NCBI GenBank assembly: GCA_964035545.1
Contig: OZ037765.1
Span: 27,093,504 to 27,157,503 of the forward strand
Reading direction: 5' to 3'
DNA: 64,000 bases
Source of the DNA: Bugula neritina
Taxonomy: Eukaryota > Animalia > Bryozoa
Position 1 is the first letter of the stretch, and each line of letters begins with the position of its first letter. The translations under genes were made by a program, and so were the position numbers. Under the pieces are notes generated by a model that was not told the origin of the DNA, did no database searches, and saw only the letters and a list, made by a program, of their open reading frames with translations. Shown here in pieces: positions 50,265 through 56,200 of this stretch.

Positions 50265-52057
50265 ATGGACATCAGACCCAGCCATACAATATATGTTAAT
50301 AACCTCAATGAGAAGGTGAAGAAAGATGGTAAGTGTTGTTGTGCAACTAAATCGTATTTGTTTGGTTTATTCTTCTGCAAGTTTAAGCATATCAGTTTAT
50401 ATAAATCAGATTTCAAGTGATGGTAAAAGACCCATATAGCTTATTATAATATATCTTGTGCTGTTTTTTTTGTAGAGTTGAAAAAATCTCTCTATGCTAT
50501 ATTCTCACAGTTTGGCCAAATTCTTGATATTGTTGCCCTAAAGTCTCTTAGAATGCGAGGTCAAGCATTTGTTATATTCAAAGAAATAAATAGTGCTACT
50601 AAGGCTTTACAATCTATGCAAGGATTCCCATTTTATGATAAACCAATGGTACGTATAGACTATAGAAGTTTAACACTAATTGTTATTCTTAATTCTCAAT
50701 GTAGAAGTTTTATTCTTTTCTTTTAAATGCCTACAATATTTTATTTTAAATATGTTTTAGCGAATATCTTATTCTAAAACGGATTCAGATGTGATTGCAA
50801 AAATGAAGGGCACATTTGTACCCAGAGAGAAAGGTCCCAAAACAGAAGAGCATATTCCTAAAAAGAAGAAAAAGAAGTAAGTCTTGGGGATTTTATTTAT
50901 ACTATAGCTTCTTTTTTGTTAAGATTAATGCACTGAAACCTGCTTTAAAAGGTCAGAAAAATCTAAATCTAACCCATATAGATAGATAAATGCTTAAAGT
51001 ATTTATTGGGCAACTTTTTATCCTAAAAAACCACATTGAGTTTCAAAATCAAAATTCATCAAATGCAGAACAATATATTACAAATATATATATATACAAG
51101 ACTATTTTGATTGTAATATCTCATTAGGACATATACCTGGAAAGATTGTTTTATACTTATGTATGATCTAGCAATGTTTAAACAGTTGACAGCGTATATG
51201 AAGTTGTAGTAATTCCATTCTAAATGTAAAGTTTCTGCATTGAAATTTTTTGCTCTTAATTTTTGTGTGCTCTAATTTATAATTATTCAATATTTACAGG
51301 GCAGCTGCTGCTGCCGCTCAAGCAGCTGCAAGTAATGACTCAGCTGCGCACATTGTCCCTCCGTCTTCTGGTACTACACCTGCGGTCATACCGGAACAGC
51401 CACCCAACCAGATATTGTTCTTGACTAACTTACCAGAAGAAACTAATGAAATGATGTTATCCATGCTCTTCAATCAGTGAGTTGCTATACAAAAACCAAT
51501 TTGCATGTGTTATTTTTTCATTTATTTTGCAGCTTTATTGGTTTCATGCTTTTTACAGCATTCATCAGGCACATTTGTATTTAAATTGTACCTCAAGTAA
51601 CACATCAAGAGGTAGTAGGGTGATGGATATCATATAGTGGTAGTCAGTTATGTGTTCGAATATTATGGAATATAAATATTTCTGTTTTATGATTACAGAG
51701 AAAAAATTTTCTTTGAATGCTGGCAGGTTAACATTAATTCGTTACTTTTGTGCGAAGTATATATTTTTGTTCTGTATAGTATAAGAAGGTTTCCAGCAAG
51801 CACAGGTTTTCATTTTTTGTGGCGGTGTTGTACCACACACACACACACACTTAGTATGGAATGTACCACTGGTTTTAATACAAAGTATATGTTGTAGATT
51901 TCCTGGCTTCAAGGAGGTTCGTCTGGTACCTGGCCGTCACGACATTGCGTTTGTAGAGTTTGAGAATGAAACCCAATCCAGTGCTGCAAAAAGCGCTCTT
52001 CAGGGCTTCAAAATTACACCAACACATGCCATGAAAATTACCTTCGCCAAGAAATAA
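50265..52057 (+). CDS. snf: U1A/U2B''/SNF snRNP protein (two RRMs). Exons 50265-50328, 50476-50648, 50761-50876, 51300-51476, 51898-52057
   Basis: [56 protein letters not shown]...FYDKPM|[19 protein letters not shown]...[28 protein letters not shown]|[21 protein letters not shown]...[14 protein letters not shown] is the SNF/U2B''-type loop. Confidence 0.97.
51834..51850. repeat. (CA)n microsatellite
   Basis: Run of cacacacacacacacac in the last U1A intron. Confidence 0.9.
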
Positions 52058-52076
52058 TTAACTCATTGGTTGGTTA

Positions 52077-52134
52077 CCGGGCTTATTGCACACACATGTC
52101 CCGGATACGAGGTGGCATTGCACTTTAACCCCTC
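52077..52134 (+). promoter_or_regulatory. Candidate U1A-binding (PIE-like) element in the U1A/SNF 3' UTR
   Basis: ATTGCAC at 52085-52091 and 52117-52123, enclosed by CCGGG(52077-81)/CCCGG(52100-04) and GAGG(52109-12)/CCTC(52131-34). AATAAA at 52333-52338. Confidence 0.6.
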
Positions 52135-53227
52135 AAATTACTAGTAACAGACTTGTAAATATTGTAATATATTAGTTACATCTTTATTGGTTTGCAGGTA
52201 TGGTTGTTAAATGCTATTCAAATGTTATATCTACACAGGTATCGACTCCAAGCCTTGCAATATCAAATCTCATCACTAGATGACATTCGTGTGCCTTTGC
52301 CGGATGTATTGGTTTGTATTTCTTATGATTTAAATAAAATGATCGATGGAACAAATTTATTGAAATTCTCTAAATTTTATCAAAGTTGTTAAGATTCTTG
52401 CATCAGAGAAAACTTTCTCTTGTACAACATGTATCTTATAAAAGGAAAAGATGCAGATTTACAGGTGTGCACACATAAGGCTGTGTAACAAATTTCAAAT
52501 AACCATATGCTTTATTGTTGGAAACTATTGACAACAAAAATGTAAATGGTGACAGGAGATAAAACAGGAGCCAAAAAGTAGTAATTCTGGTTGCCCTAAC
52601 TACCATTACAACTGGCAAAACCAAGATTCTAGCATTGATTGAAATTAAACAATTAAAGAAAACAGAACATGGTACTAGCTTCAGATGTTAATTTGAAGAT
52701 TAACAAAATGGTTTTACTCAATAACTCTTAGTTATAGTTGTCTATCAGTATAATTAGAAGATGAGAATCAGTGTAAGCTGAGTGGATGGAATAAGGGAGT
52801 ATACACTGAGGCTACAATCGAGAGGTACATTGATGAACTTAATCATTTAGCATGCATATGCACGTAGTTATCAAAAAATATACATCTTTGTTAACGTTAT
52901 GGATAAATGACATTGCACATTATATTTTTGTGCAAAACCAAAGGAATTAAAAGAAGAGATATTTTAGTATTACTATGAAGCACTCCAGAACTAAATATGC
53001 AACTTACTGACTAGCTAACTATTTTCCACAGTAACCATATGAGGAAATCACTTACTGCTACAGCCATTGCACTCACTTGAAACAATAGAGTTGAATTGAG
53101 TACAAGTTATTATACTCCGAGTTAATAGAAAACCAATTCATACAATCTAATATTGATAGTACAGCACATGGCATAAGTGTATTCTGCCCCATGGGTGTTG
53201 GTCATATGGCTGCTTAAAATCTCCAGT

Positions 53228-56200
53228 CTACTGCTCAGCTTGCACCTCTTCAGAATTTACTGGTGCATCTCCCGATTCAGCAGGCCCCTCTTCCACTTTA
53301 TCTAAATACTCGCCGATAATATCCCTAAGTCTTGTCCATGCCCGCTCAGGAATTGTTATAGCAGTTCTAAAGTTGCTGCGTACCTGATAAAAAGAAACAT
53401 ATTGCAAGGAAACTTATTTTGAAACTTCAGGAATGAAAAAGTATGTCTTCAGCAAAATGCAAGCAATCTGCAATATTTTCATGTGTATAGCAAGGCATAC
53501 ATTGTTGACATAGCTAGCGGCAGAAACGGATACAGATTCATATACCCAAAACAGATAACTCCACTATAGTCAATTAATTAAAGCTACTGTCAAAACATGT
53601 GTCTAAAAGGTGCTGAGCACATGGCATCTATTCGCTAAGTAACTCAATGTAGAAACTTGAAGCCTCAAATGTCTAGACTAAGTCAATTCCACTATCAATA
53701 ATACACTAAATGACACCATAAATTTAAACATGTTAAGTAGCCATGTGACTGCAGTGATGAAAATACCAAGATCAACACATGGTGACTAGGCATTATAATT
53801 CTTAGATACATTATCACCTGTAATTAACTGGTACCAACCTCAGATATCCGCATGTAGGTACCACGGTTATTTTGCCCAATGTCAAAGTAGAACATTTTAT
53901 TTTCAACCCTCATTGACTTGCTTTCAGGCAATTCCACAGATGTTTCTGCAATAACAAAAAATTCTATGACACATGAAGACCCTACTTCAACACAGTATAA
54001 AAAGGACTGATCAATTTCTCCGCATTCCCAATAGAAGCAATAACATAAAATTTACCTTGATCATCCGTTCCATAGTCCTCAAGAAGTTTTGATAGAGTAT
54101 CTCCAAAGTCGCCCATTCCTTGAGCTGGAATAGCTATTTGCGATCGGGGACCTCCTCTAGGTTGAGTCTGAGAAACTCTGAGGAATCTTCCACGTTGATT
54201 TTCTTTCAAGTCAAGATAGTATCTCCTGGTGCCCCCAATAATATGTGAACTTTTTAGTTTACCATCTTCTGGTACATTGTCGGGATTTGGTGGATCTATA
54301 TATAGATAATATTACAAAACCCATTTCCTAAATAGTCACAAAAATTAAGTCTTACTAAAATAGTTTTAAATCAAACTGATTTTACAATTACAAAAAAAGT
54401 ATAATTATATAAACAATTGATACTCAAATACATGCAAAGTAACGTTTTATAAAATGCTGAGTAAGTTATGCTTGTGGAAACCAACCATACCACAATAATG
54501 TTTATCGGTGTAAAATTAATGAAAATGAGTTTTCAATCAGTTTTACCTAATGCTTCATAGAACTCATTGAATTCGATTAGATGGTCTCTGAATTCAGCCG
54601 CATTAGACATTGACAATAGGAGACGACTCTTTCTACCCCCAGCACCAACCTACGAGAAATATGAGTTATGCGCTCTTTGCAGAGGTAGTTGTTACAAAAA
54701 ACTAAATACAGTAGCAAAATCACAATGAAATATCATAGACTATATAAAGAAAAATTGGCACTAGTTGACATAACATGCTAGGCAATGCAAAAAGCACCAA
54801 CTTTTGAATTAGCTACTTCATTTGGCAACACGAACATGCATTTCTTTGCAAAATTATTGAATATCAATTTTTGCTAATGAAATACTGCATAAATCAAATG
54901 CAATTCTGATAGCAACCATATCACTTGTTCTATGATGATAAACGAACAATTACCTCAGCCACTTTAATGAACCTCCCTCGCCGATTCTGCTTCACATCTA
55001 GGTAGAACCTTTTGGACTGGATTTGCAACATTTTGCTATCCAATTCCTGTTCACCTATTGACAGACAATAGAAAATATGAAAATCTCATCGAGGTAAAGC
55101 AGTTTTAGAAAAACTCAAGAAAACTCGTTTATGGTATTTTTTCAAAAAACTGTAATGCAGCCATTGACAATCAACAAACGCGCATTAGTGGACGGCAGAT
55201 AGAAGAGCTAGGAAAGCAGAGAGGGTGTTATGGGATATCACACACTATGCTAGGACAGGGAGCAAACCTATATATTGATTACACTATATCTAAATTAAAT
55301 AAATTTCAAACAACTTAGTGGCAAAAACCCAGATGTAATGTAATATTATAGTATAGAAATCTAAAGGTCGGCATAATAGTACTATTTTTTATTCAGTAAG
55401 GTCATCAAACTGCCATATAAAATATTTACTTATTACACAGGTCTACCTAATAGTACTATTTTTTATTCAGTAAGGTCATCAAACTGCCATATAAAATATT
55501 TACTTATTACACAGGTCTACCTATCTTCACAGATGATTAGAAAGGTCTAAGATTTTGTTAGTGGACAGTAGTGAACAAATGGTGGCTAGACTTAAATCAA
55601 AGTTATTAATAGTGTACATGCCAACACCAATATAATAATACAGAAAGGACAGTATTAGGGACGATTTACTATGATTTACTATTACCGGCTTGGCTCGATG
55701 AAGTACTTTCAGCTCCAGGGGATAGAGGGGCGGCCTCGTAGGCCCCACCATTACCATTTACTATCTCTATTTGGACATAATATGAATTATTGTCAAATAA
55801 TCTCATGATATGTATGTATCTTGAGTATACAGATAGCCATCTGCACACAAGTTGTAAGAGTAATTTCTTTTTCCAGCCATCAGTTACATAATATTGGACA
55901 TGGATGTGAACACAACATTTTTAAAAAGTCTAATACCGGAGTACGCCTGAGCTAAACTAAAAAATAGCCATGACTGAAGTGTGTAATAGGCAAGGACAAG
56001 GGATTTAATTTTTGTAAGATGCAGCAGTTCACTTTTTCAGCGTAGATACTGCCTGCAGATGGCTCTGAAAGTTTAATTTGGTAATAGTAAACCAACTAAA
56101 AATTCAAAATTTTATTGACAGCCATGTATAAAGCTGATTCGAAAGATTTGCAGTGAATAATTTTCAGTAAATTGTGCAATGAGTAGTGAATTTAGTTTTT

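Follow-up and report, generated by a model that had tools for sequence, protein, structure and literature searches.

U1A and its PIE element are the textbook case of an RNA-binding protein that controls its own 3′-end processing. In reviews the element is described for vertebrates only (PMC6884704, PMC5071671), and the U1A of Arabidopsis, according to one report, does not bind the mRNA that encodes it (PMC5829640). The question raised by the present locus is whether a U1A/SNF gene of the bryozoan Bugula neritina, which carries two exact copies of the heptamer ATTGCAC directly downstream of its stop codon, may be under a similar control, and if so through what kind of RNA structure. The gene lies in a 64,000-nucleotide stretch of genomic DNA (called the window below), for which a first-pass annotation had proposed a PIE-like autoregulatory element in the 3′ untranslated region (3′UTR). 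All coordinates are positions in the window, on the forward strand unless indicated otherwise.

The SNF gene and the two boxes behind its stop codon

The single-copy U1A/U2B″/SNF coding region spans 50265–52057, stop codon included, in five exons (50265–50328, 50476–50648, 50761–50876, 51300–51476 and 51898–52057) separated by introns that are all GT–AG. When these exons were joined to check the frame and the stop, they gave a coding sequence of 690 nt with one terminal stop, the TAA at 52055–52057, in a frame ending in ...FAKK-TAA. The searches for matches to U1A/SNF were carried out one exon at a time. The RRM1 in exon 2 is intact (E 2.5e-28 against the RRM1 of Drosophila SNF and human U1A) and shares 52 of 57 residues with Drosophila SNF, and the RRM2 in exon 5 is identical to that of the Watersipora subatra U1A-like protein at 51 of 52 residues (98%). 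An N-terminal U1A-type RRM1 and a C-terminal RRM2 place the protein in the U1A/U2B″/SNF family. The closest full-length relative fetched is a spliced metatranscriptome contig (L017), whose own best named match is again the Watersipora U1A-like protein (89%). Since the RRM2 exon matches the 216-Mb assembly only once, B. neritina has a single SNF-type protein, as does Drosophila. A short (CA)n microsatellite is present at 51829–51850, in the last intron.

The two heptamers lie within 70 nt of the stop, as had been noted before. Box 1 (AUUGCAC, 52085–52091, with a U before it) starts at +28 from the stop, and box 2 (AUUGCAC, 52117–52123) starts at +60 and ends 66 nt after the stop, the spacing between the two being 32 nt. 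The putative 3′UTR spans 52058–52355, its end being estimated at ~15–20 nt past the AATAAA at 52333–52338; no other AATAAA or ATTAAA is found in the 400 nt that follow the stop. The distance of about 210 nt to this signal given in the first-pass annotation is accurate when counted from the end of box 2; from the first nucleotide of box 1 it is 248 nt, and from that of box 2 it is 216 nt. The heptamer itself is not rare in the window, where nine copies per strand are found (18 in total, against 13.8 expected from shuffles). What is improbable is its occurrence as a pair right after the stop, with p ~1e-4 for at least two sense-strand copies within 100 nt of the start of the 3′UTR. The earlier view that such a pair is unlikely to be random therefore holds, even if the background on which it was based had been slightly underestimated.

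Box 2 with its flanks reads CAUUGCACUU, in which 10 consecutive nt are identical to the stem-loop II (SLII) loop of the genome's own U1 snRNA. The latter reads ...ACC[AUUGCACUUC]GGU..., that is, a loop of sequence AUUGCACUUC closed by a C–G pair (C[AUUGCACUUC]G), and the loop of the U2 stem-loop IV in the same genome is AUUGCAGUACC. For comparison, the Drosophila U1 SLII RNA in the SNF crystal structure carries C[AUUGCACCUC]G (PMC5992148).

All of the stem arms that had been proposed are present in the DNA. Hairpin 1 (52077–52104) is formed by CCGGG (52077–81) and CCCGG (52100–04) around an 18-nt loop with box 1. Hairpin 2 (52109–52134), whose arms had been written GAGG-T-GG (52109–15) and CC-CCTC (52129–34), can be drawn as GAGG-U-G/C-CCUC, with 5 bp, a bulged U and a ~14-nt loop with box 2. 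The alternative outer stem, GGTTA (52072–76) with TAACC (52126–30), can also be located. Further downstream, an ATTGTAA at 52161–52167 aligns with a third hairpin found in relatives and is probably its decayed remnant.

The heptamer in other U1A/SNF 3′ flanks

Last exons of U1A/SNF genes were gathered regardless of the sequence downstream of them, from the contigs of short C-terminal gene calls and from 80 loci on metagenome and metatranscriptome contigs, the taxon labels of most metagenome loci being inferred from protein similarity only. After collapsing near-identical UTRs, we have obtained 56 independent non-window 3′ flanks with a total of 20.2 kb. From these flanks, it is clear that ATTGCAC is the most widespread of all 7-mers, being present in 27 of the 56 with 50 copies, against 3.0 ± 1.6 copies (maximum 8) in dinucleotide shuffles. 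Its reverse complement does not occur in the 56 flanks, at the same loci one sense and no antisense copy is present in the 400 nt that precede the last exon, and the region from +400 to +800 contains three sense copies and one antisense. Because these antisense, upstream and downstream controls are nearly empty, the enrichment is specific to both strand and position. In addition, the boxes are contained in spliced, poly(A)-tailed transcripts of relatives and are thus part of the mature mRNA there; the distance between box and 3′ end varies widely among these invertebrate transcripts, from 50 to over 400 nt.

The boxes extend well beyond the bryozoans. Among the named genomes, they are found in hairpins in Watersipora subatra (Bryozoa; +26 and +107, with AATAAA at +250), Tubulanus polymorphus (Nemertea; +102), Owenia fusiformis (Annelida; +73, +252 and +307) and Pecten maximus (Mollusca; +407, +670 and +706), and Lingula anatina (Brachiopoda) has three ATTGCAC hairpins (+173, +197 and +282) together with one ATTGTAC (AUUGUAC at +224). 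No box is seen within 800 nt in Ixodes scapularis or within 1000 nt in Lampetra planeri; many clitellate-type loci have no ATTGCAC within 400 nt, and termite-type loci have just one ATTGTAC. A protein search with a lamprey sequence as query gave vertebrate sequences almost exclusively. The boxes are thus widespread, but not universal. The U1 heptamer, in most cases within an accurate copy of the U1 hairpin, marks the orthologous 3′UTRs of bryozoans, brachiopods, nemerteans, annelids, molluscs and cladocerans.

The majority of the copies sit in a hairpin of the form stem-C[AUUGCACNNN]G-stem with a 10-nt loop, the stems of which differ between loci. To guard against selection bias, all 63 unselected sites, those in named genomes included, were placed in a fixed 22-nt frame (alignment A3), and pairs were counted on the assumption of a 10-nt loop closed by a stem of 6 bp. 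In this frame 61.4% of the cells pair, compared with 28–45% when the 3′ partner is slid and 48.5% after shuffling, and the observed pairing was reached by none of 500 shuffles. The covariation score is likewise higher (0.367 against 0.10–0.18 for the slid controls). More than 90% of the 63 sites have a C before the box, and the closing pair is C–G in 41 of them. Judged from this alignment, the hairpin architecture of the relatives is that of U1 snRNA stem-loop II: the full C[AUUGCACNNN]G 10-nt loop is reproduced, on stems that are unrelated in sequence to those of U1 and in an mRNA instead of an snRNA. The number of canonical hairpins ranges from one to five, with three each in L016, Owenia and Pecten and five in L085, and offers a natural series for the study of dosage and cooperativity.

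Two groups of loci deserve separate mention. An identical stem, UGUGC[AUUGCACNNN]GCACA, is found with unlike spacers in five divergent loci (L048, L074, L077, L081 and L086), some of which are intron-less ORFs on genomic contigs; by sequence, these five look like one clade with a strongly conserved single hairpin. In another five (L028, L029, L036, L059 and L062) the box is followed by NNN and then by GGAGAC or GGAGCU, with no local 5′ partner, which suggests that the box is presented differently there, possibly in a long-range or multi-stem structure.

The heptamer may in principle have attracted another factor. AUUGCAC is also the seed of the miR-92 family, and box 1 with its 3′ flank resembles the start of miR-92/310 miRNAs. 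The box has the same sense as the seed and is thus not a target site, no pre-miRNA-like arm accompanies it, no miRNA family was matched in the window region in Rfam, and the resemblance of box 1 depends on a CCCGG that reads CCTGG in relatives; a miR-92 relation was rejected on these grounds. Each box also contains GCAC, and tandem GCAC is given as the motif of RBPMS/MEC-8 in one study (PMC5311487). GCAC pairs for a protein of this type were rejected as well, the conserved unit being C plus AUUGCAC in a 10-nt loop. The enrichment covers the full heptamer, the preceding C and the 10-nt loop, which together are the signature of U1A/SNF, and we regard a different factor of either sort as highly improbable.

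Bryozoan hairpins and the weakened state of the window sites

The bryozoan-type 3′UTRs of the window, Watersipora, L001, L016, L010 and L021, whose RRM2 identities are 92–98%, were aligned. Three hairpins can be recognized as orthologous; their stems differ between sequences and remain complementary. The window, L001, Watersipora and L016 all retain box 1 with the U before it (at +26 to +28 in the three relatives), and the inner stems of hairpin 1 vary yet stay complementary, two examples being CUCU/AGAG and CCAU/AUGG. For the outer stem, Watersipora and L016 have CCAGG/CCUGG and L021 has CCAGGGC/GCCCUGG. Relative to L021, the window is without both the A and its partner U, which gives CCGGG/CCCGG. 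RNAalifold also returns a consensus hairpin 1 across four species. Hairpin 2 is canonical, with a 10-nt loop, in L016, L010 and L021, where it is built on three different complementary stems, and its box has decayed in Watersipora. Hairpin 3 is intact in Watersipora and L016 (+107 in both), has an AUCGCAC variant in L010 and is left only as ATTGTAA in the window. The first-pass annotation had made its proposal depend on conservation in relatives, and this is what has been found: box 1 has the same position in four bryozoan-type sequences, that of the window included, and box 2 is orthologous to canonical hairpins in three others. The GGTTA/TAACC outer stem that was to bring both boxes into one structure is not common to the bryozoan relatives and can be set aside.

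In one bryozoan-type species (L021, 1415–1445; also L003–L008 and L017), hairpin 2 has a U2-type loop, AUUGCAG(UGU), and not a U1-type one. By its sequence, it may be a U2A′-dependent site for the single SNF protein.

The window sites themselves deviate from the canonical shape. Neither box is abutted by a C–G pair, and their loops of 18 and ~14 nt exceed the 10 nt of SLII. The fold of the 83-nt segment is no more stable than that of shuffled sequence (z = 0.28), and the two-hairpin structure has an energy of −10.2 kcal/mol against −16.9 for the minimum free energy (MFE) structure, in which the palindromic UGCA cores are partly paired. We have also built a covariance model of the canonical hairpin from alignment A3 (R1). 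The two window boxes score 14.4 and 13.3 bits with this model, no better than isolated ATTGCAC copies elsewhere in the window, and across the whole genome R1 gives chance-level matches only (best E 0.2), with no other clear SNF decoys. The proposal of one hairpin per box is supported by orthology, with a consensus fold for hairpin 1; the window stems themselves are non-canonical, and the segment folds no better than shuffled sequence. U1A is known to tolerate extra nucleotides at the 3′ side of the loop, and its affinity is lowered when the adjacent C–G pair is lost. Since this pair is missing, the window sites are probably weaker than the canonical hairpins, and a lower SNF affinity is predicted for them. 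In terms of the alignment, the window hairpins appear as weakened versions of the canonical ones present in other bryozoans.

How far this weakening has gone is relevant to one alternative, namely that the ancestral hairpins have decayed and that the heptamers persist by chance or under weak constraint, with no useful SNF binding. The R1 scores, which treat the window boxes like any isolated heptamer, the weak thermodynamic support and the clear decay of the third hairpin (52161–67) all agree with such relics, as does the fact that relatives have lost individual boxes, L021 and L010 that of hairpin 1 and Watersipora that of hairpin 2. However, both heptamers are exact although their flanks have diverged, the stem of hairpin 1 has been maintained by the loss of both partners of a base pair, and in the ensemble the boxes are more open than is typical, the probability of being unpaired amounting to 0.60 for box 1 and 0.56 for box 2 compared with 0.41 for the median 7-mer. 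Furthermore, among the five bryozoan-type sequences extending over this region, four have at least two intact boxes, in differing hairpins, and the fifth, L010, has one box plus a variant. Since at least two intact boxes are usually kept, though not always the same ones, the bryozoan pattern looks like turnover under selection for number. We consider it rather unlikely that the window boxes are mere relics.

A candidate feedback element and its relation to PIE

The reading that we favor, and consider fairly probable, is that the boxes are candidate RRM1 sites for the SNF protein of the same gene, acting in a negative feedback based on snRNA mimicry. The AUUGCAC boxes would imitate the loop of U1 snRNA stem-loop II. 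SNF normally binds the U1 and U2 snRNAs; free SNF in excess of these RNAs would bind the decoy loops in the 3′UTR of its own (pre-)mRNA, and the bound loops would lower SNF output, so that the whole would work as a homeostatic sensor. For the family as a whole, the evidence from the cis elements is strong. What is shown comprises the motif, where it lies, its conservation, the hairpins around it in relatives, the match to the organism's own U1 loop and an intact RRM1; that SNF binds there, that it represses its own output and at which step it does so are inferred.

The system closest to this one is PIE (Rfam RF00460). Here as there, copies of the U1A heptamer lie on the sense strand, tens of nt apart, in the 3′UTR of the gene's own mRNA, and presumably serve to sense free protein; two heptamer boxes in the 3′UTR of a U1A-family gene are found in both cases. 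The two differ in that the boxes of PIE are asymmetric internal loops in one three-stem fold just upstream of the poly(A) signal, whereas those of the window occupy two individual, weak hairpin loops close to the stop codon, and the AATAAA follows at a distance of over 200 nt. As a control, we have used the U1A gene of a cuckoo, in which AUUGUAC at +893, AUUGCAC at +919 and AATAAA at +973 are found, the second box starting 54 nt before AATAAA. This bird sequence scores 45.8 bits against RF00460 (E 9e-9), the gathering threshold of the family being 50 bits.

A true vertebrate-type PIE, in which two SNF molecules bind one folded element cooperatively and inhibit poly(A) polymerase (PAP), would fit the 32-nt spacing of the window boxes, the corresponding spacing being 26 nt in the bird PIE and 24–32 nt in the PIE-like elements of Daphnia-type loci. 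Such a topology does exist outside vertebrates. Daphnia-type loci have two AUUGCAC boxes 24–32 nt apart (L043:1406–1464, L068:1332–1398 and L069:1417–1483) in the order stem 1, box 1, stem 2 (CCAUU/AAUGG), stem-3 hairpin and box 2, and stem 1 is AUGC/GCAU or AAGC/GCUU, a compensatory change between loci. L068 and L069 encode the same last 22 residues as Daphnia pulex, and the identity of the cDNA L043 to the Daphnia protein is 90%. In a 128-nt search, L043 could be aligned with RF00460 from one end of the model to the other, with 19.3 bits and an E of 0.069, below the gathering score; the poly(A) tail of this cDNA starts ~50 nt past box 2. By this modeling, a PIE-like fold occurs outside vertebrates.

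For the window, in contrast, no RF00460 match was detected at E ≤ 10 in 51800–52500, and a PIE-type fold was rejected, because the sequence that follows box 1 does not pair with that following box 2, which makes stem 2 impossible; the idea of a single PIE-like fold has thus been abandoned. The boxes are also 210–248 nt from AATAAA, compared with 54 nt in the bird control, so that the suspicion of a different mechanism, voiced in the first-pass annotation on account of this distance, appears well placed. In addition, exon 3 aligns to residues 83–116 of human U1A, but past residue 102 the fit is loose and the matches are limited to a few basic residues. The PAP-inhibitory segment of human U1A comprises residues 103–116 according to PMC5071671 (103–119 in a wider definition). 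Taken together, a vertebrate-type PIE at this locus is quite improbable.

Returning to the snRNA-mimic feedback, the step affected is more likely 3′-end maturation, export, stability or translation than PAP inhibition by a U1A dimer, given that over 200 nt separate the boxes from the poly(A) signal and that the PAP-inhibitory peptide appears to be little conserved. PAP inhibition with a fixed geometry is also unlikely as a general mechanism outside vertebrates and perhaps cladocerans, since the distances from box to 3′ end vary so much (50 to more than 400 nt, and 210–248 nt here).

Homeostatic feedback on genes for spliceosomal proteins is also described for U11-48K with U11/U12-65K and for U1C with U1-70K (PMC5473595, PMC3798272). 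As presented there, these loops operate through alternative splicing and the binding of snRNPs to enhancers, unlike an snRNA-loop decoy in a 3′UTR. The systems most like the window are the arrays of SLII mimics in other invertebrate U1A/SNF 3′UTRs: the window boxes are positional orthologues of bryozoan hairpins 1 and 2, and the window differs in having only two hairpins, both structurally weakened. We have found no account of such boxes in invertebrate snf/U1A genes in the searchable, mostly non-subscription literature. The invertebrate SLII-mimic hairpins bear no published name in that literature, and we take this as weak evidence of novelty.

Considering the range of lineages with boxes, self-regulation of U1A/SNF is probably old and widespread. 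It is possible, and we propose it only tentatively, that self-binding through copies of the SLII loop goes back to the protostome ancestor at least, and perhaps to that of Bilateria, with the array of free-standing hairpins as the common form and PIE as a compact derivative. If so, self-binding would predate the vertebrate U1A/U2B″ duplication, vertebrates would have the compact PIE, which Daphnia-type crustaceans would have either retained or acquired by convergence, and the bryozoan window would be a slightly eroded member of a large, undescribed class of 3′UTR elements. As a somewhat eroded example of a broad pattern, the window also makes several matters testable: how the level of one SNF protein that serves both U1 and U2 snRNPs is set, whether the feedback needs an interaction with PAP, and how the compact PIE originated.

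The surroundings of the gene show some further features. Vps26 lies directly upstream of U1A/SNF, in divergent orientation, in Lingula, Tubulanus, Owenia and Ixodes (L090, L091, L099 and L101), and the two genes form a conserved head-to-head pair in those four genomes; no Vps26 match was found within the 64-kb window by tblastx. On the other side, a PurA (Pur-alpha)-like gene is convergent to SNF (53225–53401 and 53839–53952, with an ORF at 53982–54209, all on the reverse strand), its 3′ end facing the SNF 3′UTR from a distance of ~0.9 kb. Between the two genes, further sense copies of ATTGCAC occur at 52912–52918 and 53066–53072, 0.85 and 1.0 kb past the SNF stop, the former being the best, though weak, match of the window to R1 (15.6 bits). 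These copies, which are antisense to the PurA-like 3′ region, would be relevant only with a long 3′UTR isoform. A PurA-like gene is found downstream of Watersipora U1A too (L089), in the same arrangement.
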